NCBI GenBank assembly: GCA_002794465.1
Contig: MTSL01000183.1
Span: 1-18,410, forward strand
Direction of reading: 5' to 3'
Source: Paramicrosporidium saccamoebae KSL3
Lineage: Eukaryota; Fungi; Cryptomycota
Length of the DNA: 18,410 nucleotides
Position 1 is the stretch's first letter. Each line of letters begins with the position of its first letter. The notes beneath the pieces are model-generated. The model worked only from the letters and a program-made list of their open reading frames with translations. It had not been told where the DNA came from and made no database searches. The translations under genes and the position numbers were made by a program. Shown here piece after piece: positions 1-18,410 of this stretch.

Positions 1-138
1 CACGCAAAGGGTCGCGGAAAGCGCCGCTCGACGGTGCGCTGGTACAAAACAAAGAAGAATCACAAGGGATTTTGCGTCCACGTCGTCCGAAGACGTGAGA
101 TTGTAACCCAGCGCGAGGTTCTTCGAGGGAAGAATTAG
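1..138 (+). CDS. 3' end of an unidentified basic protein (partial, runs off the window)
   Basis: Frame 1 is open from base 1 (HAKGRGKRRSTVRWYKTKKNHKGFCVHVVRRREIVTQREVLRGKN) to TAG 136-138, followed by AT-rich 3'-UTR-like sequence with AATAAA. No family recognised. Confidence 0.4.
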   Translation, partial: HAKGRGKRRSTVRWYKTKKNHKGFCVHVVRRREIVTQREVLRGKN

Positions 139-282
139 AATGTTTAATGAAATAACAGCTGTAAAATAAAGCCTCCAGTATGTAAACTACGTCTTACAAT
201 TTACCATCCGACGACAGATTATACATGTCCGTTGGTGGATGGCGCTCAGCTCGCCTATCATCACAGTCAGCTCTCGACCCAT

Positions 283-336
283 CCAATGGAAACGTCTAAG
301 AACGGGTCTCATTGGCAGCGGTGTCAATGAGCCAAT
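283..336. promoter_or_regulatory. CCAAT-box cluster upstream of the 605-aa ORF
   Basis: CCAAT 283-287, ATTGG 311-315 and CCAAT 332-336 lie within 54 bp, 56-110 bp upstream of ATG 393. Confidence 0.4.
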
Positions 337-392
337 AAGCCGACCAAAGCTCTTGGGAATAAATTCAGACCGGCAAAGATGGAGCCATCAAT

Positions 393-2210
393 ATGAAGAC
401 TGCCTGGTGCTTTGTCCTTTCGATTGTTGCAGCGGCTTCAGCATCCGAGCCCGTCGCCACTACTTTGGCTGTTCCTGAAACTTCCACAACGGCAACTGCG
501 GTGCCGACAGAGTCCTCCGCCAAGACAGAATGCAAAAAGGCGACACATGGCGGTTCGCATGTAAAGATCCATATGGATCTGGCCCAGAAAGGAGCCACAA
601 AGGAGGAGAAACGTAATATGGCCACCCTCGCAAAAGGCGTATTCAAGGGCGTCGCATCAGTTCATAACCAAATCTCTCACACAAAGTCCAAGACCACCGA
701 TTGCGCCAGCTCTGCAAAGACACCCAGTGACTCAGAGTCCAAGGCTGCAAAGTATAACCGCTCGAAAATTAGCAAGTCAAAATATAAAAACTCAAGACGC
801 AAAGGCCTTGATGCTCACAAATTCATTCTGTCTCAACTGAACAAGATTTTAAACAAGAGAGCACAGCCGTGCAACTGTAAGAAATCCTACCGATACTTTA
901 GGGCAAGCAAGACTGTAGCCAAAAGCGTCCGTGAGCTCAAGTCAAAGGAAGCGCGAGTACTCGCCAAGCTTGCTTCCAAAGATGTCTGCGGCGCAGAGAA
1001 ACATCGCCTTTTGTCCAAGCTTAGTCACATTAGGGCTCTTCAGAGACGCATGCACAAGAACCGATTTGGGCCGCGAACGATTGGCAAGAAAAATTGTCAG
1101 TGGAGAAACAGCAAGTATGGAAATTCCAAGACTTTTGGACGTTTGGCAAAGCCCAACAAGAACTTGAAGACTAAAAAGTTAAAATCAAAGACCTACTCCT
1201 CAAGTATGTCAAGTAAGCGTTCCAAGATGGCAAAGATGTCTGTTTCTGGGAAAAAGACTGTAGCCACTTCGAGCGCAAGACAAACTGGTCCCATGAAAAA
1301 TGTGGCTTTTGTCAAGAACAAAACTGCAAAGGGGTCCAAATTCAAGTACTCGAAGAAAAATGGATCTTTAAAGCCGGCTTACAAAAAGCCAAAGAAGGCT
1401 GCTCAGCAACAGCCAAGCCCAGTAAACGAATCAACACCTCAACAGCAAGCTAAAATGACACCAGATCCACTGCCCGAACAAAAGGCCCAACCGCAGTCGA
1501 CGTTGCAAAGTGGTTCTAATGTCCAAGCAAATACAGTAGCACCAGTGTTAAATCCCAGTGTCACTGTTCCCAATATGACTCAAAAGGTCCCAAAAACTCC
1601 AGCTCAGCGAGCTGCCAAGTTGCAATCAAAACTACATGGAGGACCAAATCCCCAATCTCAAACAAATGAAACGGCCTCATTGGCAAATTCCAACACGGCT
1701 GCTCCCAGTACACCTCACAAGGTGCCAAAAACCTTTGCTCAGCGAGCTGCCAAGCTACAATCAAAACTACATGGAGGATCAAAGACCCAAGGTCAGGCAA
1801 ATACAGCAACTCCATTAGCACATTCCAGCGCTGCTGCTCCTAACACGGCTCACAAAGCACCAAAAACTATAGCTCAAAGAGCCGCCAAGCTGCAAAGAAA
1901 ATTGAACAATGGGTCCCAACCATCTGCGCAGTCGACTGCCGCTCCGACCACTTCTTCGGCAACGCAAACTTCTAGCACCCCGTCCACTGTAACCCCCACA
2001 AATGCCAATGGCGCTGCACCCTTGGCAGCTCCACAGACTAGCCCTACGGCTGCTGACCCGACCAAGGTCTACACTCGTTCTCAAGTTCACAAGATCTACC
2101 AATCTAGCAGACCGCTACGCAAATTGCTAAAGCGCATTGCCTATACAATCGTCGGCTGGGCAGTTGCCACTGCTAAAGAGCAGCAAGCAGCTGCAGTCGC
2201 ATCAAAATAG
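393..2210 (+). CDS. Predicted secreted, Lys-rich protein with internal 45-aa repeats (605 aa, hypothetical)
   Basis: Long uninterrupted ORF. N-terminal signal-peptide-like MKTAWCFVLSIVAAASAS, then a Thr-rich linker, a basic region (62 Lys in 292 aa, nt 522-1397) containing 6 Cys, and a Q/P/S/T/A-rich repeat half. Confidence 0.85.
   Translation: MKTAWCFVLSIVAAASASEPVATTLAVPETSTTATAVPTESSAKTECKKATHGGSHVKIHMDLAQKGATKEEKRNMATLAKGVFKGVASVHNQISHTKSKTTDCASSAKTPSDSESKAAKYNRSKISKSKYKNSRRKGLDAHKFILSQLNKILNKRAQPCNCKKSYRYFRASKTVAKSVRELKSKEARVLAKLASKDVCGAEKHRLLSKLSHIRALQRRMHKNRFGPRTIGKKNCQWRNSKYGNSKTFGRLAKPNKNLKTKKLKSKTYSSSMSSKRSKMAKMSVSGKKTVATSSARQTGPMKNVAFVKNKTAKGSKFKYSKKNGSLKPAYKKPKKAAQQQPSPVNESTPQQQAKMTPDPLPEQKAQPQSTLQSGSNVQANTVAPVLNPSVTVPNMTQKVPKTPAQRAAKLQSKLHGGPNPQSQTNETASLANSNTAAPSTPHKVPKTFAQRAAKLQSKLHGGSKTQGQANTATPLAHSSAAAPNTAHKAPKTIAQRAAKLQRKLNNGSQPSAQSTAAPTTSSATQTSSTPSTVTPTNANGAAPLAAPQTSPTAADPTKVYTRSQVHKIYQSSRPLRKLLKRIAYTIVGWAVATAKEQQAAAVASK
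1584..1988 (+). repeat. In-frame tandem repeat, 3 units, exact 135-nt (45-aa) period
   Basis: Units start at 1584, 1719 and 1854: KVPKTPAQRAAKLQSKLHGG / KVPKTFAQRAAKLQSKLHGG / KAPKTIAQRAAKLQRKLNNG, each followed by an S/T/A/N/P-rich spacer. The third unit diverges in its second half. Confidence 0.92.
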
Positions 2211-2276
2211 TGTAGTTTCAGTGAAAGTAAACTATTAATCTTATAAAATGACGTGTTTGGATAGACTTGAACCTTA

Positions 2277-2666
2277 ATGTCTACTACTCGAGGAATACGA
2301 CGGACAGAACAGAATCGCATCGCACAGCGTTCCTTCAGGCAACGTCAGTTAAACTACATTAGAGATTTGGAGGAAAGGATACGGCAGTTGGAGTGCATCA
2401 CCGAGGAGACTCGAAATCTCCGCCGCCGAGTAATATTTCTAGAGGGACTAGTCAGTAAGACTAATTGCGAGTATGATCTAGCCAAAGCAATGCGGGATCC
2501 CAAAAATGACCCAACACTTGCGCCGCAGTATCTAGATGACGACGAGACTTCAATACTTACGAGCGCACCAAGCCCAACACTTTCGGCACCCCCTTGCCCT
2601 CGTTCTCGAAACGTTCCTTCACGAATGACCGTAGCCAAGCGACTGGCAGACCAAATGAGTGAATAG
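2277..2666 (+). CDS. bZIP transcription factor, Yap/AP-1-like basic region (129 aa)
   Basis: RRTEQNRIAQRSFRQRQ matches the fungal Yap-type QNRxAQRxFR basic motif and is followed by a heptad zipper (IRDLEERIRQLECITEETRNLRRRVIFLEGL). Confidence 0.85.
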   Translation: MSTTRGIRRTEQNRIAQRSFRQRQLNYIRDLEERIRQLECITEETRNLRRRVIFLEGLVSKTNCEYDLAKAMRDPKNDPTLAPQYLDDDETSILTSAPSPTLSAPPCPRSRNVPSRMTVAKRLADQMSE

Positions 2667-2916
2667 GAGGGTTCATATAAGACTGGAAGTGCAAATTCCT
2701 TGATCAGAATCTGTAGTCCGTCTTGTTGTCGTATGACGGGGATATGATCACGACGTTGTCATAATTTGTTTTTGGACAACAGGGAAATGTTATGTGTCAA
2801 CTGTTTTTATGGAATCACCAGCATAGTGTCAATGAATTAAGCCATGGGTACACTAAAGTGTCGATTTGCCCGTTTCGCATTTGGTCCCACAACAACAAAT
2901 GCACGGCTGATCATTC

Positions 2917-3076
2917 TGTGACGTAGAGGCAGAGGATTGACTAGTCGGGTATTTGACGTAGAGGGTTGATTAGTTGCTGGGTATTTGAGGACAGTGGGAT
3001 GTGTATCCATACTATTATAGGATTAGCAGTGAACAACCCCCCTTCCCGTCTGTGGTAATATCTCCACTACGCGACA
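2917..3076. mobile_element. Dispersed ~160-bp non-coding element, copy A (MITE- or solo-LTR-like)
   Basis: 2979-3035 matches 16113-16169 at 54/57 nt, 2922-2956 matches 16088-16122 at 33/35, and 3060-3078 matches 16203-16221 at 18/19. Ends TGTGACGTAG...CTACGCGACA are imperfect inverted repeats (8/10), flanked by ATTC on both sides. The repeat is certain; mobility is inferred. Confidence 0.55.
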
Positions 3077-3127
3077 ATTCCACCATTTTACATTATAGTA
3101 ATTTTTACAGTTAACATCATATTGCGG

Positions 3128-4549
3128 TTACTTGAAGATGGCAACAGACTTTGGATTGGTCACTGTATCGTATCCAAGCTTACTGAGGGAAAGTCCTAGT
3201 CCAGAGCACTTGCGTCCATTCCAAGAAAGTCCAGGATCTACAAAATTATGATAGCTCTAAACATTTATACGGAGCCAGTCGCATTTGTTCATATACACTG
3301 AGCCGGAGTCAAAAAGATGCGCATTCCCCTCAACAAACGAAGGATCAGATGTCCAGATCGAAGTGGTTAAACCGTAGGGTGTTTCGTTGATACGGACGAT
3401 AGCCTCCTCGTCGCTGGTTACGCGACAGATGGCAACATTTGGGCCAAAGACTTCAGTCGTTAGTATCGTGGAGTCTCTTTTCGGCTCAATAAAGGCCACC
3501 GGCGCAAGAAACGTAGGGTTTACGGAAAATTCAGGAGGAACTTGTAGTCTCAGGACCCTTGAGCTGCCCTGCTGATCAGACAGAGCAAGCATAATGTTCT
3601 TGGCAGCATCCTCAGTAACAACTGGCCCTAACAGTGTTGCTGGATTTCGAGGATCTCCTAACTTGTAGTCTTGCATCGCAGACTCAAATAATGAAACAAA
3701 GGCGTCAAACTTTGATTCGTGCACAAATATCCTCTGGATGCCACAGCAAGACTGCCCACTATTAAAGAATGCACCATCGGCCAAGGCCGAGGCGGCTTTT
3801 GTAAGGTCCACATCGTGACGCACATATGCAGCATCACAACCACCTAATTCGAGGCTAACTTTGATAAAGTCGGACTTTCTCGAGGTGCTCCGACTTGCTA
3901 CGGCTTGCCCCGCTCTTATAGATCCCACCAGCGAAATGTAATTGATTTTTGGATGAACTGCTAATGCTTCAGTATTTTCATTTGAGAGATGGACAGACTC
4001 CAAGAGACCTGGTGGGAGGCCGCCTTGGACAAATGCATCCCTGATACTGTCCCCAACTGGCGCCGTCTGGGTCGCGTGTTTAATGATGACTGCGTTCCCC
4101 GCAGCAAGTGCAGGGATCAGTGTATTGACAACGACAAGATAGGGATAATTCCAAGCACCGATGATCAAAACTGTGCCTACGGGCTCCTTTCGAATTGACA
4201 ATTTGTAGGTATCGCTTTCCTCAACGGCAGTCTCTTTTAATTGCTCAGTCGCTAGCTCGAGAAGATAGTTTGCACGATATGCAAAACCCTGGATTTCTCC
4301 GGGTGTGTACCGAATAGGACGTCCAATTAATGCCGTGAGCTCAGCAGAGAGTTTAGCCTCGGCTTCCACTAGTCTGTTTACCCCGCCGCGAAGAATGGAA
4401 ACTCTCTTGTCAACTGAAAGTGACTGCCACTCCTTTTGCTTTGCGTGAGATATTTCAAGGATTTCATCCACGTTGGTGGTGTGCAGAACAGTCTTTACAA
4501 TTGACCCGTCAATTGGGCTGATAATGTCAAAGCTTGAAGAATTGACCAT
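3128..4549 (-). CDS. NAD(P)-dependent aldehyde dehydrogenase (462 aa, 2 exons)
   Basis: ALDH motifs IIGAWNYP, IIKH, VGSIRAG, LELGG (catalytic Glu), NSGQSCC (catalytic Cys), EVFGP and YGLTTSIWT. Removing a 33-nt intron (3238-3270, GTATAA...TGTAG) restores the C-terminus CDWLHPGLSWNGRKCSGLG...PKSVAIFK, with TAA at 3128-3130. Confidence 0.95.
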
Positions 4550-4554
4550 TCGCT

Positions 4555-4613
4555 CTGATTGGTTCGAACCAATTGGTCACCAGCCGTTCGATGCCTCAGC
4601 TACAACCAATCAG
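4555..4613. promoter_or_regulatory. Palindromic CCAAT cluster in the 141-bp divergent promoter
   Basis: Four CCAAT/ATTGG boxes. Perfect 16-bp palindrome ATTGGTTCGAACCAAT at 4558-4573, and a 10-bp inverted repeat CTGATTGGTT (4555-4564) / AACCAATCAG (4604-4613). Confidence 0.55.
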
Positions 4614-4690
4614 GTTGGGTAGACTGGATTATGTTTCGTGCGTGCCTAGTTAACTTGCATCTTTCATGGACAAGACAATTGTAGCGCAAC

Positions 4691-5512
4691 ATGCTAAAGA
4701 ATATTGCACAGGTTGCCATCCTTCTTTCCGTCACCCAGGGACACAATGTCACTGAGCCGAAAATGCCCGTCAAGCCGTACGATTTAGCGTACATGTGGGC
4801 CGACTATGCGTTGGTCTTTGAAAACTATCCGGCTCTTTCGTCTAAGAACCTTACTGAATCTACTATGCGCGATGCCTTTAGTAGCTTTATTGCTCCGCTG
4901 AAAGAATACTGCAGCTCGATCAAAGACAAGAACGTGACCGACGCCAAGCGCAAATCCTCAGTCGTCGGAATGCTGGACCAGCTGGCCAGCCCAGGCTCCT
5001 TCAAACAGGACAAGTTTAACGACGATGACTGGAAGACCAACCAGATGTGGAGCACTGTGATGAAGCAGGATACGCTCAGTAAGGCGCAAAAGACAAGGAA
5101 CGACCTCTACATGGGAATCAAAAAGAAGAACAAGCAAGACAAGGCAATTAAGCAGTACCAAAAAAATCTCAATAGCTATCGGGATGTCATGATGGCGGCA
5201 GAGGAGAAGGAATACAAGACTATGATCACCGACAAGGCCATTGATTGGGATTTATATACCAAGAGATACTTGGAGCTACTAAAGGTGATAAAGAAGGACC
5301 CTGCGAAATATTCCAACAAGGTGCGCGGCTACTTTGCAGTCTGGCTCCATGATGGAAATGCCAATGACGACGTTTTCAAAACTTTGAGCAGAAGCGCAAG
5401 CACAAAGGCGCAGGATAAAATCAAAGATATTTTCTCCACCAGCGATGCCCGTGTCACGATGCCAGCGCTGCAGCTTTCACTCCTCGGAGTTTTGGCCTAT
5501 CTCATGCTGTAG
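4691..5512 (+). CDS. Predicted GPI-anchored surface protein (273 aa, hypothetical)
   Basis: Signal-peptide-like N-terminus MLKNIAQVAILLSVTQG, three N-X-T sequons, and a charged K/D-rich helical body. Small-residue STSDA is followed by a terminal hydrophobic tail (MPALQLSLLGVLAYLML) with no cytosolic residues after it. Confidence 0.8.
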   Translation: MLKNIAQVAILLSVTQGHNVTEPKMPVKPYDLAYMWADYALVFENYPALSSKNLTESTMRDAFSSFIAPLKEYCSSIKDKNVTDAKRKSSVVGMLDQLASPGSFKQDKFNDDDWKTNQMWSTVMKQDTLSKAQKTRNDLYMGIKKKNKQDKAIKQYQKNLNSYRDVMMAAEEKEYKTMITDKAIDWDLYTKRYLELLKVIKKDPAKYSNKVRGYFAVWLHDGNANDDVFKTLSRSASTKAQDKIKDIFSTSDARVTMPALQLSLLGVLAYLML

Positions 5513-5647
5513 GATAACCAAATTATCAGTAAATACGGATAACATGTTGATGTAATGGTTTATTAATTGTAGACAGGATCCAGTAAGTGGATCGAGAGTT
5601 CACCTAAACTGGCCAGGGACGACAGCTCATTCGCCGGTGGTACAGGG

Positions 5648-5992
5648 ATGATGTGCTTTGCATGGTTTATGGCCATCTTCCTCCTGCCGATGTCGACTGC
5701 GCCACCCATCAGCATTCTCGCTATCATCCTCAATATGCTCCTCCTACAACCAACCCGACCGTGTCTGTACTGTGCCCTACTCTTCCTGCTGTTCCTCTTT
5801 ACGCCCATGTATGGAGGGGAGAATTGGCCGAGATGGATGCCTGATAGTATTTGGAGAGATGTGCAACGCAACTGGCAGATGGACTCGGCCGGTAAATTGA
5901 TGCCTGGATTCTGGCAGGCCACGCAGGCGTGGACCAAGTTTTTGTTTGCGACGAGACCCCACCCTGCGACTGCTCCTCAGCTGTTCATCTAG
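5648..5992 (+). CDS. BC10 / BLCAP-family small membrane protein (114 aa)
   Basis: The pattern M-x-C-x-x-W...LLP-x-x-TAPP...hydrophobic...RPCLYCALL resembles the BC10/BLCAP family as I recall it (MxCLxW..LLxP; R/KPCxxC between two TM segments). Recognised by eye, not by HMM. Confidence 0.65.
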   Translation: MMCFAWFMAIFLLPMSTAPPISILAIILNMLLLQPTRPCLYCALLFLLFLFTPMYGGENWPRWMPDSIWRDVQRNWQMDSAGKLMPGFWQATQAWTKFLFATRPHPATAPQLFI

Positions 5993-6066
5993 GAGTGAGT
6001 TTACTCTTGTTCATAAACTTTTTAGAAGATTCTTATTATAAAATGCTTTTATCGGGAACAATAACA

Positions 6067-7761
6067 TTAGTGACGATGGCCAGCGTGGTTTCCGCGCGGA
6101 ACACCATCAGGTCCGACACCTGGAAGTGCCGATTGAAGCTGGTCCGAGTGTTTTGCGGCCTTGACGGTGTAGTCTACAGAGAGAATGGTGCAGGCGGCTT
6201 CAGTGGCAGCGGCAATCAAGTTGGTCTTGACCAAGGCGGGTTCCCAGACAAAGGCTGCCATGTTGTCAGTGACAGACTCGTTGGCAATGTCCACACCAGC
6301 CCAAATTTCACCAGCAGCATGGCGCTTCCTCAGCTGCGTCAAAGTGTCAATGGAGTCAAAGCCAGCATTATCGCACAACTGACGGGGGATGGCCTCAAAT
6401 GCATGAGCATAAGCCAAGACGACCAATTGCAGCTTTCCGGGAATCGTCTTTGCTTGCTCCCGGAGATATCGGGCCAGTCCCATCTCAACTGCACCTCCAC
6501 CGGCCACAATCGTTTGATTCTTCAAGGCTCGACGTACAATCATGATGGCATCGTGCAAGGAGCGTTCTACTTCGGCAATAAACTGCTCAGAGCCTCCACG
6601 AAGGAGCATGGTGCAGGTCTTGGCCTCGGAACAGCCTGAAAAGAAATTATAGCGCTTCTCACCCAACTGCCTCTCCTCAAAGCGAGCACAGCTTCCCAAA
6701 TGTTTGCCATGGACGTCATTGACAGTGGTTTGTACAGCGGCACCAGTGGCGGACACCATTCGCTGCAAATCAGAATCCTGAACGCGTCCCGCAGCAAAGA
6801 TTCCACGCTCAGCAAAGTATTGAGTGGCAACATCGCCAATGGCAAGTTTGGAGAGGACGACCATTGCTCCGCTGGCAGCAATTTTATCCAGTTTTTCAAA
6901 CAGAATTGTCCACTCGGCATCGACAATTTTTTGATAGTCTTCAACCTTGTCGATGCGAACTTCGGCATTATCACGCTCAGCCTTCAGTTCCAATTCCAAA
7001 TTCAGCAAAAGAATCTTGGGATTGTCAAAATGTTTGGGCTGCTGCTCAAAGCCGGCATATGAAAATGTCTTTTCAAATGCGACACCGTCGACGAGCAACG
7101 AGTCCTGCATGCCACCTCCAGTGACCTTTTTGGTTCCAATCATTTTTTCATTCAAATCCTCCTGGTCGAGCATGAGCACTGCATCAACTACCATTTTGGA
7201 GAAGAATTCTTGTTGAGACTGAATCAGTTTGGAATTCATGCTGGTGGAGGCGCATTTCTCAAGAAGTGACCGTAGCTCTACAGGGTCGTCGCGTTTGACT
7301 GGGACGGCAATCTCTCGAATACGCTCCAATGCCAACTCGCACGCCATTCGGTACCCTTTAACAAGTATCTGCGGTGCAACATCCTCCTCCACAAACGGTT
7401 TTGCCAGCTTGAGCAGCTCGCCGGCAAGCAAGACGACACTGGTTGTGCCGTCGCCGACCTCGGCGTCCTGTGCCCGAGCAATGTCCACGAGCGTACGTGC
7501 CGCCGGATGCACAATTTCTAAAAGTTTTATAATGGTCGCACCGTCATTGGAGATGGTGGAACGGCCATTGCCGTCCACAATGAGCTTATCCATACCGCGG
7601 GGCCCGAGGGTGGTGGACAGTACTTCGACAACAGACTGACATGCTACAATGTTCGACAGCACCTGTCCCTTTCCCTGCGACGTATCAGTGCCCTCTTTGA
7701 GGATGATAATAGGGGGTCTCTACATTATTAGCTCAATCAAACAACCAACGCTTACAATCAT
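6067..7761 (-). CDS. CCT7: T-complex protein 1 subunit eta (chaperonin CCT7), 552 aa, 2 exons
   Basis: [29 protein letters not shown], the CCT7-specific [16 protein letters not shown], and VAGGGAVE. Exon 1 is ATG ATT (7761-7756), then a 36-nt intron 7720-7755 (GTAAGC...GCTAAT...TGTAG), giving [21 protein letters not shown]. Confidence 0.97.
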
Positions 7762-7841
7762 ATTGGGCCCCATAATTGTTCTGGAAGGTCGGAATCCCCG
7801 GCACGCCAATAGGTGGTGAATGGGTTGGTAGGAGATTTATT

Positions 7842-7891
7842 GAGTTGTGGATTGACTAGTATGAGCTGTACCGAGTTGTGGATTGATTAGT
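7842..7891. repeat. Direct repeat, 2 x 19 bp (GAGTTGTGGATTGAYTAGT), 31-bp spacing
   Basis: Copies at 7842-7860 and 7873-7891 with one mismatch. The core GGATTGAYTAGT resembles sub-repeats inside the dispersed element. Confidence 0.75.
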
Positions 7892-8267
7892 GTGGGGTTT
7901 ACTAAGAATTAAAAAGAGCCTGTGTTCAATATAGTGGTTCAATCGCCCACATTAGCGATAGGCGATGAAACAACCCGCGTTCAGGTAATGAAATCCTCTA
8001 TGTTGAGCATGATCAGATGAGAGACCCTACTCTATAGAGGACATTCAGCCCTACAAGAGATGCTCCCATTAAGCGTGTGCGTTGGTGGCTCCTATACGCA
8101 AGTACAAGGGACCTCGTGTCACATTGGCGTGATCACGCAAATTTGGAAGAAACAAATCCCCTCCCGCATAGTAATGTGCCTGCAGGTCGAGTTGCTAGAA
8201 CACGTCATTCTTACGCTCAATACATAGTCTATTAAGTTCTACACTATACTCTGCGGAATGTCCATGA

Positions 8268-8411
8268 CTAAACTTGGGACATTGAAGTGACAGTAGCCGT
8301 TATCCTCCCACCCGTGCCACACAGAACGGTCAGCACCGCCACAATTCCAACTACAACTAGTGATACCAGCAAGAGAGCCAGAAACACTACCAGAGCATCA
8401 TATGAGAGCAT
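8268..8411 (-). CDS. Possible small single-TM or signal-anchor protein (first exon; may be spliced further)
   Basis: The first true ATG is at 8411 (the track start at 8456 is TTG): MLSYDALVVFLALLLVSLVVVGIVAVLTVLCG, strongly hydrophobic. A CCAAT cluster lies just upstream. Downstream exon structure is unresolved. Confidence 0.35.
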   Translation of the reverse strand: MLSYDALVVFLALLLVSLVVVGIVAVLTVLCGTGGRITATVTSMSQV

Positions 8412-8452
8412 GCTCGCCGGAGACGGGACACTAAGCACTGGGTCGATGGACA

Positions 8453-8534
8453 CCAATCGACCCTAAATCACCGATCACCAATTGGACCGTCCATAAATAC
8501 GCAGCACCAATCACATCTTCTCCATGTTTATTGG
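8453..8534. promoter_or_regulatory. CCAAT-box cluster
   Basis: Five CCAAT/ATTGG in 82 bp (8453, 8478, 8481, 8507, 8530), including the palindrome CCAATTGG, between the FANCI stop and the small minus-strand ORF. Confidence 0.45.
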
Positions 8535-8541
8535 ACAGTTC

Positions 8542-11500
8542 CTACAAATCCGTGCCCACTTCAAGAGTCATCTCAGCCGGCTCACTGGTGACGTCACTAT
8601 CTGATGCATCCACCTGCTCCAGAGCGGTCTCAAGCTCATCGAGTTGTATCCTAAAGTCACGAGCAGTAGACCGGTGAAACGACTTGACAATTGTCGTTCG
8701 ATGCAGTTTGCCGAGAGCAAGGACACTACGCTCAAATGCCTCAATGTGGAATATAAGGCCCGGAACGAGACGCGTCTCTTTTGCAATAGAGTTGCGAAAC
8801 CTCCTGGTCAAATTGTTCGTTTTCTTCTTGTGTTCAGAGAGCTCGCGATAAAGCTCCAACTCATTTTGCTGAACGATCGGGAGCATTATATAGATGTTCC
8901 GTGTCAGATCCCCGCTTATATGCGCAACCATTAGCGTAAACGAGTCGCTCAGAGGCAATTTCCTCGTCGCCATCTACAAATTGAGCAAGATGATTCAACA
9001 GAGTACCAATTGGCACACGGACACTACAACTTTAAAGAGAGACTGAAGAGCATCCATGAGGCGGCTGTAGCTACTACCACAGAGAGCGGCCTCGGTAAGA
9101 ATCACACACGCTTCACTCATCCAGGATAAATCATCGCAAATCCCATTCAAGGAACTAGAACCTTGGATGCTAGATGTCTGGCAAATGGTTGCTGTAATTT
9201 CTGTAAGCCATTTGCACTCTTCCAGCCGAGACTTTATGACCTTCCAAATGGCGTTCACGACGTGATCCGCCGATCTCGATGTGATCATTTTGAGTTTGGC
9301 TTGCAATGCTGGTCCCTTGGGCGTTTCAGCAGAATCGGTATCAAGCCGGCCAATTGCCAGCAAAACATCTTTACAGATTATCTTCATGTTGGTCCCGGTG
9401 ACATTTCTGGGATACGAAACGACTAATTCAGCGAGCAATTTGGCCAACTTGGCATCTGAGTCCGAATATGGAGTCCACGTCCTGCAAACTTGGAGGATGC
9501 TATTATTGAACGCTACGTCGCTAAATGCATCGATCCCGGAGCAGGCTTCCAGTAACAATTCAACCAAAATACAGAGATCCTTGGCGGGGAGTTCTTTGCC
9601 CGAGAAATTTAGTAAAAGTGTGCCCACTTCTGACACTTGTGTGCTGCATAGAGCATTTTCTTTACAAACAAACTGCAATTTTGAAATCCATCCAGATATC
9701 AGGCGCTTCTACAATGTTTAGCAAATTATTGGTTTTACAGGATTTGGAAACTTGCAATCTGGGCCACCTAGAAATATTAACACTTTGACCACATCATCCA
9801 CATCTTGGCTTGCACTCCATGGAATTTGACACAAATGCGATAGTAACAGTTCTAGTTGGGAGTGTGTCTTCATGCTGAGGTACAATTGTGCTAGCCGTCC
9901 AGCGCAATCCAAGATTATCAGTTCCGAAACTGGGTTGGTAAACTGAATTGTAAACCGTTCTCGCTGGGCAACAATTTTGGCCATGGCCTCGATCTTCATA
10001 CCAGACTCCAGATCATCACAATCCAAACAGTAAAGCAGGCCAAAATCATAAAGCCCAGTCACAATAGGTCGAAGGTTGCTCTGATGAAGCACGGGAATTT
10101 CCGTGGGAAACCATGCGATATTGTGACAGAGAGTCTCAGAGAGATTATTCATGGCACCAATACAAAGAATCGCCTCTTCGGTAGTGGACCCTTTGCTGCT
10201 TTGTAAGAGGATCTGCAAAAGCACGGGGAGGAATTCAGTGACTCTTCCGTGCTCGTCAATACATTTATTCAGCATTCCTGCCCAATCGGTCATATTTTCG
10301 CCACTCCAAAGCTTTTGAAACTACAATTAGCTACTAAACTTGGAAAATTTGTACCTGAACAAATGCTAGCGTGAAAATCGAGGGAATGGAGACTGCATGA
10401 GTCTTTACCATTTGCAGCAGCTCTGTGTATACATTCCATTTCAAAGAAATTCTGTCCACGGAATACAAAAGAGTCCCTAGCGTCAATCGATCAACTAAAT
10501 ATGTGTACGATATAAAACTGCCAACGATGGTTTTCCTTGAGATATATGCGTCAAGGCTGACCGAATAAACAGAGCAGGACTTGTGTTGGCAAAGTGCACA
10601 AGTTCCACTTCATTCAACATTGGTAAAATGAGTGCTTGTGACTCACCAGTCTTTCCTAGGCTTTGAATGAAGGAATTTGTATACTCGGGCCTCTCTCGAA
10701 TAATTTCACAGAGTAACTTTCCGCCATTTATAGTAGAGAGTTCTCCCAAAACACTTGCCGAGCATTCTAGGGAAGGCTGAGGAATGCAGGATTCGCCAAA
10801 CAAAGACATTTCTTCAATGATTGTCTTGATCATAACCCGAAGAGATGCTTCAAATTTCTAAATCCTTATAATAAAACGAGAGAGACTCACTTTTCCGACC
10901 GACACTAGATATTTGATGGCTGATTGTCTAATTATCTGCAATATTGCTTTATCCGTATGCTTGTACGCAGCCAGATCATTTCCCAGACGGATTAACCCAA
11001 GAATACTTGGCTCATCATCTAAATCAACAATGTCAACTAGTCGCTCCAAAATCCTCTCCAAACGCGGCCACCTCGCGACGTCAATTCCTGGAATACTCCC
11101 GAGATGCTCTAATCTTCTTCGCGAGACAACGAGATTCACAAGAAATGCCAAAACGCGTTTTTCTAAAAGGGCGCCGAGTAGCAGGACAAGGAGGACTGGA
11201 GATGGATTCATGGAGGATCGGAGGGCCGTGTTTGCATATTTTACAAACGCAGTAAAAATTAAAGACTCGTGATTTAAGGCCAACTTGATGTGAGAGAGAC
11301 ATTCACCAACATGGTCGCATTGGGTTTCTAACAGGGCAAACGTCATTTCAAAGCAGCCTGTCAAGGTCGGTGAATTACGGCACCACAACAGCACTTGATA
11401 CAGAGTAGCAGGAATGTCTTTGCGAGGAACATCTTCCATCCGCTTAAACATGGATTCATACACCTGAGAAGGTAGGGTGACGTTCACTTCTCTAAATGCT

Positions 11501-12006
11501 ACGATGATTGACAAAATATTGTCAGGATGCACGGGAGAGCTTGCAATCTGCTGGATAAATGAAGTTGCAGTTGATCCACCAGCACACTGTTTACCATTGT
11601 TGAATTCAATTACTTTCTTCTCAGAGAGAACGGAGGTTATAACTGGAATAAACTCGATGCAGTCATTTCTTAACTTGCTGCCTTTTTTAAACTCTTCTAA
11701 GAAAATTTTCACTAGCAGTAACAGTCGTGCCACTTCCAGCGAGCGTGCCTATCCGATGAAAACTACATAAAACTGCTACCTTGGCAGAGAGGATGCGGAA
11801 TGCTTCGCGTGTAGTAGAAACAGAAACATCATCACTCGCCACTGCTCCAAATATAGGCTGGATATCGGCGTTCGTTGCATCAGATTCAATTATAGAGCCA
11901 AATCCTGTGCATATTCCCTTTTTAAGCTCTGCCAACACATCACCAGCCTCCAATGGCTATAAATACATTAGACATTGCCCGAGCATACTGTCTCGGCTGA
12001 CAACAT
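8542..12006 (-). CDS. FANCI: Fanconi anemia group I protein homolog (about 1079 aa, 8 exons)
   Basis: C-terminal ETRLVPGLIFHIEAFERSVLALGK...RSTARDFRI matches the FANCI C-terminal motif (ETKxIPxLIFxIExYE...STxRDFKI). Exons 12006-11989, 11956-11780, 11748-10891, 10857-10509, 10476-10355, 10320-9739, 9708-9007 and 8973-8542 sum to 3240 nt in frame. Introns are 30-34 nt. The short first exon is the least certain part. Confidence 0.85.
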
Positions 12007-12027
12007 TAACAAAGTGGTTTTCCTTTA

Positions 12028-13403
12028 ATGCCATTGCATGAAGTGTTGTTTGATGCCGCTCTCCTGGCAGCGGCCCTGATTTGCGGATCTTCACTGGTCA
12101 TGCTAAATAGCTCTGATTATACAAAGAGCTTGACCCCACTGTTAATAGTAGTCTCAATTGACGCCTTCCGGTACGATTTTCTCAGCAGGCCGGAGAGCAA
12201 AATACTTGCCAAGATTGGTACAATGTGGTGCTAGCTAATTGGCAGCAAGGGAGGGATGTTATGGCCCCATGGAGACGCAGTTTCCCACCTTTACATTTAC
12301 GAATCACCACTCCACGATGACTGGACTCTACCCAATGTACCACGGCATCGTGGGCAACAATTTTTTTGACATTGAACAGAACAGGACCTTTTCATCCAGA
12401 AACTCCTCTGCCGCCTCAGATCCGTCCTGGTGGTCTGCCGAACCAGTAATACAACAGTGTGGACTAACATACAGATCTGGATTACGGCAAATAAAAAGGG
12501 TAAACGGACAGCCACACTGTTTTGGCCCGGTGATACGGCATTCCACCATCCTTTGCACCAAAGTCTTCACTACGACAAGGCAATTACTGGGGCAGATCGC
12601 GTCCGGACTATACTCGGATGGGTGGATGAGGATCCCAAGCTGTCTCTTGTCACTATCTATTTCTCACTAATCGACGATGCGGGACATCGATTCGGACCAG
12701 AGTCGCCACAGATGAGCGTGGCTTTGCACCACCTGGACAATCTACTAGGGGATCTATTAGGCGGGCTTGAAGAGCGTAGATTATACAAGCGCGCCAATTT
12801 GCTTATCCTCAGCGATCATGGTCTGGTTCAGGCCAAGGAAGACTCTAATATTGAGATTGACAAGTATATTCCAGAACTACAGAGTCTGATATTGTGGATG
12901 GATTATAATTCCATGACAACTATATTTCCCAAACCTGGAGGTCAAATCCGCATACTATCTGATATTTGTAGAAGGAGACAATGTTTATGCGCTACTTGAA
13001 AAGGCCATTTTGCAGCATCAGCTTCCTTTGAGTGTGCTGTGGACCAAGGATCTCCCTGTTCATCTTCAGTTTCGCGAAACGAGTCGCATCGGCCCAATCA
13101 CACTGGTCACTGACAAGGTACACGGCCGATATTTTACTCGACTTTTAGGGCTATATTCTGTCGCGCACAGGAGGACGAAAGCATGGGGGATTTCATGGGT
13201 ATGATCCAAGGATGACAGAGATGCACGCCATGTTCATCGGGGTCGGTCCCGACTTTAAAAGAACAGGAGAGATCAAGTCTCGATTCTCCAGTTTGGACGT
13301 GTATAACTTGCTGTCGACCTTGCTGAGAATCGCACCCCTTCCCAATAATGGCACGATGAGCTTGGTGGAATATTGCTGCAAAGATCCCATATGGCCGAAC
13401 TAG
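12028..13403 (+). CDS. Ectonucleotide pyrophosphatase/phosphodiesterase (ENPP/NPP family), paralog 1, 418 aa, 5 exons
   Basis: Motifs VVSIDAFR, FPTFTFTNH (catalytic Thr), TGLYP..HGIVGN, FWPG, DDAGH, LSDHG and FHGYD. Introns at 12218-12245, 12446-12474, 12941-12971 and 13118-13148; exons total 1257 nt in frame. Confidence 0.92.
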
Positions 13404-13690
13404 CATAAATACAACGAATTGTCCGAGCTCTGCCAATTCAGTGCACTACTCTGACACTAAGATCAGAGGATACATCATTGTGATGTAAAGTGACAAGATA
13501 GCTGACCAATCCCTTATTAAGAGTGTAAGGTTAGTAATAATACCCTTTATTGGAACTCTTAGTCCGTAATTATACCAACTTACAATGAGAAAGAGCACAT
13601 ACCTGGGCCAAATATTATACTAAAGAGTCTTTACTTCCAAACTCGTACTTTTACCTTATAATACAATAATCACCCCAATTTTAGCAGTCT

Positions 13691-15082
13691 ATGGACGCAT
13701 CTTGGTCAAATGTACCAATGCCATCATCCACTAACTCTTAGACAAAAGGCCTCTGTGCTAGACAATGGACTAGAGTTGCCATCTACACTACCATTCTCGC
13801 CGGCTGTCTGCTGTGGGTGTTGCTTTACGGAAAGAGTCCTGGACAAACAAATACTGATGGGCGCCTAGTCATGCTCATCTCGCTGGATGGGTTTCGATAC
13901 GACTATCTCGAGCGCGGTCTAACACCTACGCTTACTGCGCTTGGTACTCGAGTTGGTGATTGGTAACGGATGTTAGCACAAAAAGGCGTCGTGGGTCCAA
14001 TGCAAGTGCAATTTCCGAGCTACACCTTTCCGAACCATTTTACATTGGCCACTGGGTTGCTTCCCGTGTATCACGGAATTGTCAGCAACAGCTTCTATGA
14101 CCCCATACTGAAGGAATTTTTTATTTACAATGCAGGAAATAATAGTCATGAGAAATGGTGGAATGCGGAGCCTGTACTCGGTGAACGAAACTAATCGTAG
14201 ATTTGGAATTCAGCAGAAAAGGCGGGCATCAGAACTGGAGTTTTATTCTGGCCCGGTTCCGATGTCACGATTGCAGGAAGGAAACCCTCGCTGACAAAAC
14301 CGTTCAATTCCAGCGTGCCCGCCTCGGAGCGTGTAAATCAGATTCTTCAATGGACCGACGAAAAGATTCGACCGGGTTTCCTGGCGCTGTATCTGTCCGA
14401 GGTTGATGACGCCGGTCATTGGGCTGGACCTGAGTCTTCTGAATTAGGAAGAGCTTTGAGCGAAATTGATAATGCAATCTTGGAGCTTCTTGAGGGATTA
14501 GAGCAGCGAAATTTAAGAGAGATCACTGACATTATTATTGTGAGTGATCACGGAATGACGAGACAATCAGAGGAGAAACTTGTCCCAATTGAAGATTTAA
14601 TCAGTGGGCCGATGATGGAAAAACTAGACTGGATTGACTATGGCCCGGTAACCTCGATAATCCCACGAAACGGTCATCTTGACAGCGTCTTTGCTGAATT
14701 ACAATCGTCAATCAGTCGTCTCAACATTCCCTTGAATGTTTACCGTAGTGGCGGACTACCCGATCGTTACCATTATCAAAACAATGCAAGGATCCCACCG
14801 ATCATTATAGAATGCGAGTTGGGCTGGTCAGTGACCTTTCGAAAGAGTGAATGGATTCCCAAGGGACAGCATGGATATTCTCCCGCAAGTCGTGACATGC
14901 ACGCAATATTCTTAGCAAACGGACCCAGGTTTCGCAAAAACCACATCATTTCCACCCAGAATAGTCTCGATGTATACTATATGGTGGCTAATCTCCTCGG
15001 AATCGACACCCCCTCTACCAATAGCACTGATTCTCTGTACAGGCTTGTGTGTCCCGCTTTGCGCCGCCATAAGATTTATTAA
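13691..15082 (+). CDS. Ectonucleotide pyrophosphatase/phosphodiesterase (ENPP/NPP family), paralog 2, 433 aa, 4 exons, type II anchor
   Basis: N-terminal TM segment [18 protein letters not shown]; motifs [36 protein letters not shown] and QHGY. Introns at 13712-13741 (CTAAC branch), 13944-13976 and 14174-14200; exons total 1302 nt in frame. Confidence 0.93.
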
Positions 15083-15105
15083 TTTGTTTCCATAAAGTCA
15101 ATTTG

Positions 15106-15963
15106 ATGATTATCAACGTGCAGGCGTCGCATGACAAAAAGTTCCCTCTTGAAGTAGAAGCCAGCAATACCGCGGCCGAGCTAAAGACAAAGATTGGAGA
15201 GGCGCAGGATATTCCAGCAGAGGAGATTCGACTCATCTTCTCGGGACGAATTCTAAAGGACACTGACACGGTCGAGACTGTTCGCATGGCCGAGGGTAAC
15301 ACTGTGCACATGGTCCGTAGTGGCAAGAAGACTGCTGCTAGCCAGCCAGTGGCGGTTCCTGCCACCCAGCCAGCTGCACAGCCGACCATGCCTCAAGGCA
15401 ATCGTCCCCCGATGCAGATGCCCGCGGGGGGAATGCCTATGGGAATGGACATGAATAACCCAATGATGTCTGCCATGCTGCAGAACCCCGAAATGATGCG
15501 TCAAACCATGGAGATGCTGAGCTCTAATCCGCAACTGATGCAAGCTGCCATGCAGTCCAACCCGGCATTCCAGAATGCGCCGCCGCATGTACAACAGATG
15601 ATGCAGCGGCCCGAGTTTTTAAGGATGGTTTTGGAGATGACTATGGCACAGGGAATGGGCGAGGGACAGATGGGGCAGTTGGGACAAATGGGACAGGTGG
15701 GACAGATGGAACATGTGTCTTCCATGCCTCAAGCATCAGGTGGAGAGGGCGACTTTGCTCAATACATGCAAACTTTGGATCAGTTGATGGGGCAACAAGT
15801 TCAGTCACCCGTCTCCAATGAACCGCCAGAAGTGCGTTTCCAAAGTCAGCTTCAACAACTCACCGATATGGGGTTTTACGACGCTGACGCTAACATTAGG
15901 GCTCTCCTTGCTTCAGGTGGAAATGTCAATTTAGCCATTGAGCGTCTCCTTCAAAATATGTAA
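15106..15963 (+). CDS. DSK2: Ubiquilin/Dsk2 UBL-STI1-UBA shuttle factor (285 aa)
   Basis: N-terminal UBL ([12 protein letters not shown]), Met/Gln-rich STI1-like middle ([16 protein letters not shown]) and C-terminal UBA ([18 protein letters not shown]...[12 protein letters not shown]). First ATG is 15106 (the track start at 15103 is TTG). Confidence 0.93.
15664..15708 (+). repeat. 9-bp in-frame minisatellite x5 ([15 protein letters not shown])
   Basis: ggacagatg gggcagttg ggacaaatg ggacaggtg ggacagatg inside DSK2. Confidence 0.85.
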
Positions 15964-16082
15964 ACGTGTGCTTGATTTTGGTATAATCAATAATGTAATT
16001 TCGACACTTGAAAATATGCAATCACGAGCATCGAAACAGTCCAAAGGTTTTGTATGCTTGGTTTTGAGATACTCAATAATGT

Positions 16083-16236
16083 TGTGGCGTAGAGGCAGAG
16101 GATGGATTAGTCGGGTATTTGAGGACAGTGAGATGTGTATCCATACCATTCTAGGATTAGCAGTGAACAGGTTTTCTTCTTGCCTAAATTGGGCCGTGAT
16201 TTATCCCCACTACGCGACAATCCCCACCACGCGACA
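16083..16236. mobile_element. Dispersed non-coding element, copy B
   Basis: Same orientation and same three homology blocks as 2917-3076. Left end TTGTGGCGTAGAGG (16082-16095) versus right end CCACTACGCGACAA (16207-16220) is a 12/14 inverted match. The right end is tandemly duplicated up to 16236. No clean target-site duplication. Confidence 0.5.
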
Positions 16237-16361
16237 TTTAACAACACGTAATCACGGGTACCTGGATTGATCGTCCTGTGACTTTTATTCAATAGTGTAA
16301 TTTGAACAAGGTAGAGTTTTGTGGACTCGGCAGTGCAATTTTGATATCTAACAGTACGCAT

Positions 16362-17084
16362 TTACGAGTACTGAGCTTGGCTAGAGTTTTTCACCCAACG
16401 AGGTTTTCCGTTTGCGTCGGTCCGACGCGTGGCATATTGGCTCTTCCAGCCAAGCGTAAAGGCCGGATCCCAGAGTTCATTTCCAATTCCCAAATCCTTG
16501 CACGCTCTCATCAATGCATTTGAGCGAACCACCTCACTGGCCATCGCGGGATTGCTGAACCCCATAATGGACGCATGGCCTCGTGCCTGACTCACAAAAC
16601 GGCCTCCGCAAAAAAGCGCATATTCGCGAGACAAGACGCCACCAGCCAAAGAATGTGCTCCGCGCGGCATTAGACACCATCCACCAGGACCAAAGGCCTT
16701 GCCAAGAATCTTTCGGTATCGATTTTCTGGAAGATACACTGCACCGTCTGGCTTAATCTCAACATCCTCTATCGCAAGTGGCGCATGCAAAATCTCGGTC
16801 ACATCCTCTGGAAACGCCTTTTCAGAGGCCCCCTGATACAGCGCGCTTGTATAATCCTGTCCCACCTCTTCCGGGAATGGGTTAATGGCAGCTTTCATTT
16901 CGGTGGGCTGGACGGAACGCGGAGTAAAGGTGCGCTGAAAGCGGGGTGTCTCAGACATTTCTTCTTGTTCAGCGGACTCATTCTCGGCGGGAAAGGTGCG
17001 GAACGTGGGGCGAGTGGCAAATTGCTGCATAAGGACACTTGAAGTGCTCAATTGCCGGCGGAGGAGGGATATATTACGGAGCAT
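16362..17084 (-). CDS. MGM101: Mitochondrial genome maintenance protein Mgm101 (Rad52-type ssDNA annealing), 240 aa
   Basis: Arg/Ser-rich presequence MLRNISLLRRQLSTSS; family motifs EIKPDGAVYLPENRYRKIL.KAFGPGGW.L.PRG, REYAL, and SNALMRxCKDLGI..ELWDP. Confidence 0.92.
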   Translation of the reverse strand: MLRNISLLRRQLSTSSVLMQQFATRPTFRTFPAENESAEQEEMSETPRFQRTFTPRSVQPTEMKAAINPFPEEVGQDYTSALYQGASEKAFPEDVTEILHAPLAIEDVEIKPDGAVYLPENRYRKILGKAFGPGGWCLMPRGAHSLAGGVLSREYALFCGGRFVSQARGHASIMGFSNPAMASEVVRSNALMRACKDLGIGNELWDPAFTLGWKSQYATRRTDANGKPRWVKNSSQAQYS

Positions 17085-17238
17085 TATTGATGTTGGAGCT
17101 CGCGATAAAAGAAAGCCTGGAAATGCCTTTTCAAGTTGTATTAGAGTGTTTGGGAATTGAACCTTACTAGCCTATAGCATATGTCAGCAGCCTTTAAATT
17201 GGTGGTGATACCTTAAATCTGGCCATTTGAGCACTGTG

Positions 17239-17478
17239 ATGCGAACATGCCTAATGTTGTCACTGGTAGCGGAAGCCTGTTTTTCACTCACAAAGCGGCA
17301 TCATGGCAATAATTTCAATCTTCCTTGGCGACCAATTTCGAACGAAATCCTGAGCCGCTCAGATTGCCATGATGAGCCCGCTTTACTAGATCGAAGGATG
17401 GACGTCGAGAGTTTCCAAATGGTACATTTCAGGGCTGTGAGACTTCTTGCTTTGACTACCCGAACGGCTTCAGAATAA
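17239..17478 (+). CDS. Possible small secreted protein (79 aa from the first ATG), unresolved
   Basis: ORF divergent from MGM101 with a signal-like N-terminus MRTCLMLSLVAEACFS. No homology recognised. Confidence 0.25.
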   Translation: MRTCLMLSLVAEACFSLTKRHHGNNFNLPWRPISNEILSRSDCHDEPALLDRRMDVESFQMVHFRAVRLLALTTRTASE

Positions 17479-18021
17479 GCGGAGGGAAATGCCTGCAAAT
17501 ATAGTAGCAAAGTAATTCAAGATGCGCCAGTCTATTCTTCTTTATTCGATAATTAAAGGCACGATCTGCGGACTCGGCCCAACCCTCAATATCTTACATG
17601 AGATGCAATTTCCAACCCCAAAGACACACTTCTCTTTCATTAATACCCAAACTACAACTCTCCCATTCATCAAAAGGACAGAGTCATGTAGGCTTTAATG
17701 TCACAAGCTGTTAGAAAGCTGGAGATTTCCTCCTTTGACTGCTCTCAATATTAGCGTGAGGCTGGTGCTTGCAGTAGAGTCATTACGGATGCACCTTTTT
17801 GTTTGAGGAGGAAGAAAAACCATTCGTCATCAATGTGTAGAGTCGCCCCAGCATGCGATCAGATTAAAAGGAGATTGCTATTCTCGTCTTAGTCGGCCCA
17901 TCCTCTATAAAAAATCAGCCAATCATTCCAGTTATACCATTTCGTAATTCCATAAACTCTCAAGGGTGTTGTCAAACGCTGTACCACATGCTAATGTAAA
18001 ATTTTAGTTGCTTAAACTACC

Positions 18022-18410
18022 CTATACGTCTCCATATCTGATCACGCGTCGGACAGTGCGAGCCCTTCGTGGGCCTGAATACGATGAATTTGAGGACGAC
18101 GAATGTGATGATGGTGATGAGGCATACGAGGACGATGACCGTGACGATGAATCCGCTGAGAATGACGCCAATGATGAATCCGAAGCTTCTGCATATTGAT
18201 AGCGAGCTCCAAATTTCATACGACTACGGTATCCTTCTCTGGAAATTACCTGAGGCATCTTTTTTTTGGACTTTTGTACAGTAACATTTTTCTCCAAGAA
18301 ATCACTCATCTCCTTCCACTTGCTGGCTTTGGCTACCTTCAAAAATCTCGGGTGATTTAGTAGTTCCGGTTTGGTTTTGTGAATGTACTTGATGACACCC
18401 AGACGTCCAG
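18022..18410 (-). CDS. 3' end of a gene with an ankyrin-like segment and Ser-rich tail (partial)
   Basis: The minus frame is open from the window edge (GRLGVIKYIHKTKPELLNHPRFLKVAK...) to the stop at 18022. GxLxVIKYIH resembles an ankyrin-type repeat. The poly-Ser tail uses mixed TCN codons. Confidence 0.55.
   Translation of the reverse strand, partial: GRLGVIKYIHKTKPELLNHPRFLKVAKASKWKEMSDFLEKNVTVQKSKKKMPQVISREGYRSRMKFGARYQYAEASDSSLASFSADSSSRSSSSYASSPSSHSSSSNSSYSGPRRARTVRRVIRYGDV

Follow-up and report, generated by a model that had tools for sequence, protein, structure and literature searches.

What is the short non-coding unit that occurs twice, 13 kb apart and in the same orientation, in the DNA of Paramicrosporidium saccamoebae KSL3 (MTSL00000000), and how did it come to be there? 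This intranuclear parasite of amoebae belongs to the Rozellomycota, of which few have been sequenced, P. saccamoebae among them, and its lineage serves studies of genome reduction towards the Microsporidia; we know of no interspersed repeat family described for it. The genome of 7.3 Mb comprises 76% gene space and 0.53% repeats, mostly simple or low-complexity (PMC5701793). The window analysed here consists of positions 1-18410 (18,410 nt) of contig MTSL01000183.1 (assembly GCA_002794465.1; whole contig 20,100 nt), the one public contig on which the MGM101 and ALDH proteins of the window were found.

The first-pass annotation of this DNA had described three homology blocks (33/35, 54/57 and 18/19 nt) separated by a diverged spacer, together with an internal tandem duplication in one copy, and all of these are present, the blocks measuring 37/40, 54/57 and 17/18 in our hands. 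The repeat is therefore genuine, with a unit of about 150 nt made up as follows.

2917-3092, plus strand: copy A of the element; homology to copy B is certain as far as 3085 and the second 3' unit reaches 3092
16083-16236, plus strand: copy B, of which 16083-16231 is the inserted segment, while 16232-16236 (CGACA) is common to the element end and the target
2979-3035, plus strand: 57-nt core of copy A, identical to 16113-16169 at 54 of 57 positions
16113-16169, plus strand: core of copy B, counterpart of 2979-3035
3036-3058, plus strand: variable segment of copy A, 23 nt, unalignable with the 32 nt of copy B
16170-16201, plus strand: variable segment of copy B, 32 nt, with a T4 run at 16172 inside it
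2922-2988, plus strand: internal tandem duplication of copy A, with units 2922-2956 and 2957-2988, where copy B has a single unit

Within the window, the 5' block (2917-2956 against 16083-16122) was recovered by BLASTN with an E value of 6e-12, the core block with 8e-23 and the 3' block (3059-3076 against 16202-16219) with 2e-4. According to both repeat search and BLASTN the blocks are collinear over 2917-3085 and 16083-16229, running past the first ACA, as the annotation had itself cautioned, while the segments lying between the core and the 3' block are unrelated in A and B. The tandem units of copy A are identical at 25 of 29 aligned columns, with indels in addition. Upstream of the initial TGT and downstream of the second 3' unit no significant flank homology was detected (p = 0.87, 0.16 and 0.31), and a longer unit of roughly 215 nt was rejected on that account.

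Neither BLASTN nor nhmmer detected a third copy in the window or in the remaining contig (20.1 kb), and nhmmer gave no support to a degenerate third copy suspected in the 768-nt CCT/FANCI spacer from a 17-nt match at 7875-7891. Searches for exact core, 5'-block and 3'-block patterns in JGI metagenomes, IMG/VR and GTDB genomes returned zero true matches, the chance ones being 18-26 nt long and not extending. The label low-copy, as used here, rests on the published repeat figure of 0.53% (PMC5701793). The window also holds three tandem 135-nt repeats at 1524-1928 (73% and 64% identical to the first), situated inside a 605-aa, signal-peptide-bearing, lysine/serine-rich ORF (393-2210) and encoding 45-aa repeats (…KVPKTxAQRAAKLQSKLHGG…) with no Pfam match. 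At the contig end (18025-20099; L001 1-2077), on the minus strand, there is an ankyrin-repeat gene broken by four N runs, whose best relatives are metagenomic proteins and oomycete, diatom and chytrid ankyrin proteins with about 30% identity. Queries with this ankyrin-like gene and with PSACC_02940, a secreted protein, found no P. saccamoebae paralogues but revealed a sister lineage in Logan SRR16214429 (L003, L007); public data contain at least two such close relatives, with 77% identity in PSACC_02940.

Both copies were said to lie in 3'-3' spacers, copy A between bZIP and ALDH and copy B between DSK2 and MGM101, and Pfam bears out the genes and strands: bZIP (plus strand, stop 2666), ALDH (minus), ubiquilin/DSK2 (plus, stop 15963) and MGM101 (minus, stop codon 16362-16364). 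The placement of both copies in convergent spacers (2/2), for which we estimate a chance of about 0.09 from spacer lengths, is not statistically meaningful, and the remaining two convergent pairs of the window leave no room for the element (74 nt in one, overlapping genes in the other). The right edge of spacer A is formed by an exon that the deposited annotation lacks.

3128-3237, minus strand: unannotated last exon of ALDH, joined through an intron at 3238-3270 and closing with the stop codon 3128-3130

In the deposited ALDH model (430 aa, stop 3257) the Pfam match stops at profile position 425 of 461; reading on along the minus strand, a 33-nt GT...AG intron is followed by an in-frame exon of 110 nt (3237-3128) that encodes HPGLSWNGRKCSGLGLSLSKLGYDTVTNPKSVAIFK, aligning with the conserved ALDH C-terminus of homologues. 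Given this true stop, spacer A extends over 2667-3127, and since 35-42 nt separate the end of copy A from the stop, copy A probably lies within the ALDH 3' UTR. The ALDH ORF as called in a distant relative (L005) breaks off at the same point, and the intron position appears conserved. A second model of the contig, the 846-aa deposited protein PJF17247.1 (12269-15963), fuses phosphodiesterase and ubiquilin/DSK2 domains. In this region the frame appears to stop near 13401, and about 360 nt devoid of a long ORF follow; 15082 is the end of a second phosphodiesterase ORF, after which the start of the ubiquilin ORF lies about 20 nt further on in a different frame. In another relative (L004) the phosphodiesterase and ubiquilin/DSK2 are called as separate genes, and the arrangement as a whole suggests that PJF17247.1 represents separate genes wrongly fused. 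Two apparently faulty gene models on MTSL01000183.1, ALDH and PJF17247.1, are thus exposed.

The history of copy B is recorded in spacer B, which carries a locally duplicated 61-nt segment, intact in one instance (U1) and interrupted by copy B in the other (U2).

15966-16026, plus strand: U1, the paralogous empty site, made up of R (15966-15996), AATTT and 16002-16026
16052-16082, plus strand: left half of U2, 26/31 identical to U1 and ending exactly at the 5' end of the element
16232-16256, plus strand: right half of U2, 19/25 identical to 16002-16026
16286-16308, plus strand: R3, which repeats the motif a third time (TCAATAGTGT-AATTT); it overlaps the minus-strand AATAAA of MGM101 and is conserved in sister lineage L008

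U1 reads ggtataatcaataatgt-AATTT-cgacacttgaaaatatgcaatcacg, beginning cgacacttg after the AATTT, and U2 reads gagatactcaataatgt, the element (16083-16231) and cgacatttaacaacacgtaatcacg, beginning cgacatttaac after the element. Among all window positions on either strand, the best match of the 25-mer 16002-16026 is the one at 16232 (19/25, the runner-up having 17/25), with p ~1e-5 for this right half in a shuffle limited to 31 positions around the junction. Copy B stands in the place of AATTT, with 149 nt gained and 5 nt of target lost, and since TGT-AATTT is also kept by R3 and by the sister lineage, the uninterrupted state is ancestral. The comparison of empty U1 with filled U2 thus shows copy B to be an insertion that replaced AATTT, with no target-site duplication, a 5-nt target loss and microhomology at the right junction, where CGACA is at once the end of the second 3' unit of copy B (b2) and the start of the target, which leaves the junction ambiguous by 5 nt. 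The limits of the insertion (16083-16231) fall within 2 nt of the independently derived limits of A/B homology (16083-16229), and the inverted repeat begins exactly at the 5' junction. Given the missing duplication and the loss of target, the integrase or DDE-transposase route to which the TG...CA ends had pointed is ruled out for copy B. The DSK2/MGM101 spacer thus contains, over 15966-16308, three copies (U1, U2 and R3) of a 25-60-nt motif with TCAATARTGTAATTT; looser matches to the TCAATARTGTAATTT motif (3 mismatches) occur at 2204 and 6059, in each case where another gene has its 3' end, and the motif may be a 3'-end signal.

The ends of the element had been described as imperfect inverted repeats, which proved correct. 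The element starts with TGTGRCGTAGAGG and finishes with CCACTACGCGACA, the latter present as two tandem 17-nt units.

2917-2929, plus strand: 5' inverted-repeat arm of copy A, TGTGACGTAGAGG, 10/13 complementary to 3064-3076
16083-16095, plus strand: 5' inverted-repeat arm of copy B, TGTGGCGTAGAGG, 11/13 complementary to 16207-16219
3060-3092, plus strand: 3' arm of copy A, two tandem units of 17 and 16 nt, a1 (3060-3076) and the degenerate a2 (3077-3092)
16203-16236, plus strand: 3' arm of copy B, two tandem 17-nt units, b1 and b2, 16/17 identical

The inverted repeat of 13-14 nt is above chance: with generous positional slack allowed, the 11/13 match of copy B was reached by 7 of 5000 shuffles, and the 10/13 match of copy A by 73 of 5000. 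A repeat search gives the arms of copy B as 16082-16095 and 16207-16220 with 86% complementarity, and the duplex energy of the terminal stem is -20.7 kcal/mol for B and -13.6 kcal/mol for A, in which A·C and G·U stand where B has G-C pairs. TGT is found at 2917 and 16083, with ACA standing at 3074-3076 and once more at 3090-3092 in copy A, and at 16217-16219 and once more at 16234-16236 in copy B. The first 3' units are ATCTCCACTACGCGACA (a1) and ATCCCCACTACGCGACA (b1), and the second ones AT-TCCACCATTTTACA (a2) and ATCCCCACCACGCGACA (b2). Because a2 and b2 have the derived CCACCA in common, as against CCACTA in a1 and b1, the duplication of the 3' unit is older than the split between A and B. 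The mobilised segment consequently reaches 10-17 nt past the first 3' arm, and one arm is subterminal. If copy A is taken from the TGT at 2917 to the ACA at 3074-3076, ATTC does stand on both sides of it, as the annotation had reported while warning that this might not be a true target-site duplication. The warning was justified: the right-hand ATTC (3077-3080) forms the start of a2, whose counterpart in B reads ATCC, so it is internal to a second 3' unit that both copies possess, and we rejected it as a duplication.

To place the insertion in time we used two sister lineages, L007 (Logan SRR16214429) and L008 (JGI 3300042204), with MGM101 proteins at least 90% identical to that of P. saccamoebae and coding DNA 85-89% identical (66-74% at third codon positions). 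The element is absent from the 209 and 279 nt that their contigs contain past the MGM101 stop; these same stretches hold the R3/AATAAA region (R3 alignment p = 3e-4), and in P. saccamoebae the element sits about 126-279 nt from the MGM101 stop. Gene order is kept in L004 (GCA_047514055.1; MGM101 66% identical) and L005 (Logan SRR33465434; ALDH 52% identical), and the element is absent from the 254-nt MGM101/DSK2 spacer of the former and from the ALDH/bZIP spacer of the latter, 227 nt as called. Given that the A/B blocks are about 94% identical (about 6% different), against 66-74% third-position identity to the sisters, the copying was recent and much younger than the sister split, in agreement with a lineage-specific gain, and on these comparisons the element is probably lineage-specific.

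Several other features of these relatives were recorded. The contig-end 50-56 nt of L007 (1067-1122) and L008 (1155-1205) are mutually reverse-complementary (75% over 56 nt, E 1e-6), so that a short segment is inverted between the two lineages, whether through an inversion, as a palindrome or as some further small element; both assemblies break at this inverted segment of the MGM101-downstream spacer. L008 has a (GTGCGA)n-type microsatellite (about 950-1005) right after the MGM101 stop, missing in P. saccamoebae and L007. A 15-nt likeness of the sister-lineage tail to 13539-13553 and 13621-13635 of the window (E = 0.45) was judged to be chance. In a search for the DSK2 and ALDH loci of the sister lineages, a chimeric protein query returned relatives that are distant but conserve synteny, and a metagenome locus search returned only an ALDH with 34% identity. 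L004, a more distant genome, agrees with P. saccamoebae in gene order across MGM101, DSK2, phosphodiesterase, FANCI and CCT, and L003/L007, L008 and L004 are useful for comparative work on the Paramicrosporidium clade.

The reading that we prefer, with confidence that is about even, is that of a discrete hairpin-ended unit, neutral and low-copy, of which end joining placed a copy in 3' intergenic DNA. A chromosome break would have been closed by end joining or by a repair process relying on microhomology, and would have taken in either the unit itself or a copy that an A-like donor supplied. Such a route would employ neither an integrase nor a DDE transposase, and would draw on a free copy of the unit or on synthesis from the A-like donor, which lies at a distance of 13 kb. 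The unit would then persist between two convergent 3' ends, where insertions may be least harmful, genes taking up 76% of the genome. The position of the element in spacer B is past both poly(A)-like signals, namely the MGM101 AATAAA (16289, minus strand), which is conserved in the sister lineages, and the AATAAT (15989) downstream of DSK2, and this would account for its location without targeting. The extra unit of copy A, its replaced variable segment and its weaker stem look like decay rather than function, and the element is most likely a neutral low-copy passenger. Against this stand the inverted-repeat ends at the insertion boundary, which are expected of a transposase substrate or of a small RNA with a terminal stem and not of a random repair fragment, as well as the fully replaced segment of 23 or 32 nt between blocks that are 94-95% identical, which is unusual for pure neutral drift. 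Copy A could be a resident functional locus.

A rather unlikely alternative to the passenger is that copy A is an expressed small non-coding RNA gene, possibly transcribed by Pol III, and copy B a dead DNA or cDNA copy of it captured at a break. The limits of the insertion would then be those of the transcript and the missing target-site duplication would be explained; the conserved ends around a variable interior resemble those of some small-RNA paralogues, and the predicted terminal stem is in keeping with such a gene. Its sole Pol III-like feature at the 3' end is the following.

3086-3089, plus strand: T4 run that begins immediately where A/B homology stops, accompanied by a T5 run at 3102-3106

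The homology stops at CCACCA just before this T4, and the T5 lies 16 nt on; copy B has only TTT after the element and a T4 inside it (16172), which copy A lacks. A T4 in AT-rich 3' DNA is, on the other hand, only weakly improbable (about 3-5% by our own estimate). tRNA-type genes have an A box with the consensus TRGCNNAGTGG. In our own comparison with this textbook consensus, the 5' end matches 8 of 9 specified positions in copy B (TGGCGTAGAGG) and 7 of 9 in copy A, but no B box in the element exceeds a 7/11 match and no TATA was found upstream of copy A. At the gathering threshold Rfam 15 has no match for the element, and at E <= 10 it gives only unrelated weak ones (snoR28, 18.5 bits against a gathering threshold of 45; DLEU1, 14.4 against 30); ARAGORN finds no tRNA or tmRNA in it, and on inspection no arrangement of C/D or H/ACA boxes held up in both copies. 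The fold of copy A is ordinary (z-scores +0.11 and +0.53; minus strand -1.2), and that of copy B marginal (-2.1), driven by the terminal stem. On either strand RNAalifold retains the terminal stem alone, the interiors of A and B folding differently, and the differences in the core hairpin (G-to-A, T-to-C) are not compensatory. Furthermore, the 32-nt duplication in copy A would disrupt a structured RNA, and a cDNA origin of copy B would depend on a reverse transcriptase, whereas retroelements are almost absent from this genome.

Coding capacity was sought as well. Copy A has stops in all frames, a six-frame chimeric protein query of the element had no match at E <= 10 among 5.8 billion proteins, and an exhaustive HMMER search with a 110-aa ORF over copy B gave only spurious matches to translated satellite repeats. 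The element was thus found to contain no clearly structured RNA, known RNA family or coding signal, and with Rfam, ORF and protein searches negative, it matches neither a described RNA family nor a coding exon.

It is also conceivable, though unlikely, that the two copies belong to a hitherto undescribed Paramicrosporidium family of mobile units with hairpin ends, which integrate with no target-site duplication and accumulate between convergent poly(A) sites, either as DNA elements moving by a non-DDE route or as copies of a small Pol III-type RNA. Such a family, if true, would be found in a genome otherwise nearly transposon-free.

We consider it doubtful that the element is a canonical non-autonomous transposon (a MITE of Ginger-like or other DDE type) or a solo LTR, cut at TGT...ACA with 4-bp duplications, multi-copy and enriched in terminator spacers. 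Its termini fit TGTNR/...ACA and the terminal inverted repeat is above chance; it is small and lacks coding capacity; ATTC flanks copy A on either side, and two copies per 20 kb hint at high density or local hopping. The empty site of copy B, however, reveals a 5-nt loss and no duplication, with flanks of ATGT/ATCC or ATGT/TTTA; the right ATTC of copy A starts a second 3' unit which is carried by copy B too and is tied to it by the CCACCA of a2 and b2; the mobilised segment passes the first 3' arm by 10-17 nt; and repeats, mostly simple, make up 0.53% of the genome (PMC5701793). Of the earlier suggestion of a MITE- or solo-LTR-like element, what stands is a discrete unit with inverted-repeat ends, inserted at B, and what lacks support is the assignment to the LTR or Ginger type, copy B having no target-site duplication.

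Least probable is a selected cis-acting module of convergent gene pairs, such as a bidirectional terminator, a regulatory hairpin of the 3' UTR or a protein-binding array with TGACGTA-like and GGATTAG repeats. In its favour, both copies lie between convergent genes in the same orientation, copy A probably falls within the ALDH 3' UTR at 35-42 nt from the stop, and conservation is higher in the blocks than in the variable segment. Against it, neither of the two sister lineages has the element in its orthologous MGM101/DSK2 spacer, and more distant relatives that share the gene order lack it in both spacers; the window's two further convergent pairs offer no room for it; and copy B is a recent insertion beyond both poly(A)-like signals. 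The annotation's further proposal of a structured RNA or terminator module likewise found nothing positive in its favour, given the empty Rfam result, the ordinary folds of copy A, the differing interiors and the absence from the sister-lineage spacers.

The recent insertion of copy B shows that new DNA is still entering the intergenic spacers of the compact P. saccamoebae genome, and the entry route would be end joining rather than classical transposition. Should the unit prove to be a real family genome-wide, it would constitute a small new element class in a lineage used for the study of genome reduction towards Microsporidia; with only two copies, it would be a DNA-repair curiosity.

Among known systems, Helitrons have 5' TC and 3' CTRR ends, insert between A and T and carry a 3' subterminal hairpin. 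They were rejected: the element has plus-strand ends TGTG... and ...CCACCACG (or ...GCGACA), minus-strand ends CGTGG... and ...CCACA, and flanks T|T and G|C. Pol III RNAs of the vault or Y RNA type and their SINE-like copies resemble it in length, terminal stem, A-box-like motif, the T-run after copy A, and conserved ends around a variable interior; unlike the vault and Y RNA types it has no Rfam match, B box or structure conserved between copies, and unlike products of SINE retroposition it has neither target-site duplication nor tail.

With MITEs the element shares a length of about 150 nt, the lack of coding capacity, terminal inverted repeats, an intergenic location and at least one copy inserted relative to an empty site. 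It differs from them in that the one testable site has no target-site duplication and has lost 5 nt of target, in that its 3' arm is duplicated and the inserted unit passes the first arm, and in that two copies are seen in a 20.1-kb contig; we know of no autonomous partner. Ginger elements and LTRs have TG...CA ends and target-site duplications of 4-6 bp (4 bp in Ginger1), and Bao, Kapitonov and Jurka are said to have described Ginger termini as TGTNR in 2010. The TGTGR at the 5' end of the element and the TGTCG given by the reverse complement of its 3' arm both fit TGTNR, and the 3' arm has ACA. In contrast to Ginger elements and solo LTRs, the 4-bp duplication is not real, the inverted repeat of 13-14 nt is longer than typical LTR ends, we know of no internal retroelement or integrase to go with the element, and an LTR of about 150 nt would be very short.

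Repair-mediated capture, as in NUMT-like or templated insertions, is matched by the absence of a target-site duplication, the small target deletion and the CGACA microhomology at copy B, and by the presence of donor and recipient on one contig, 13 kb apart. The ends of captured fragments are normally arbitrary, whereas the 5' end of the element falls exactly where the inverted repeat starts, which points to a molecule whose ends were defined.
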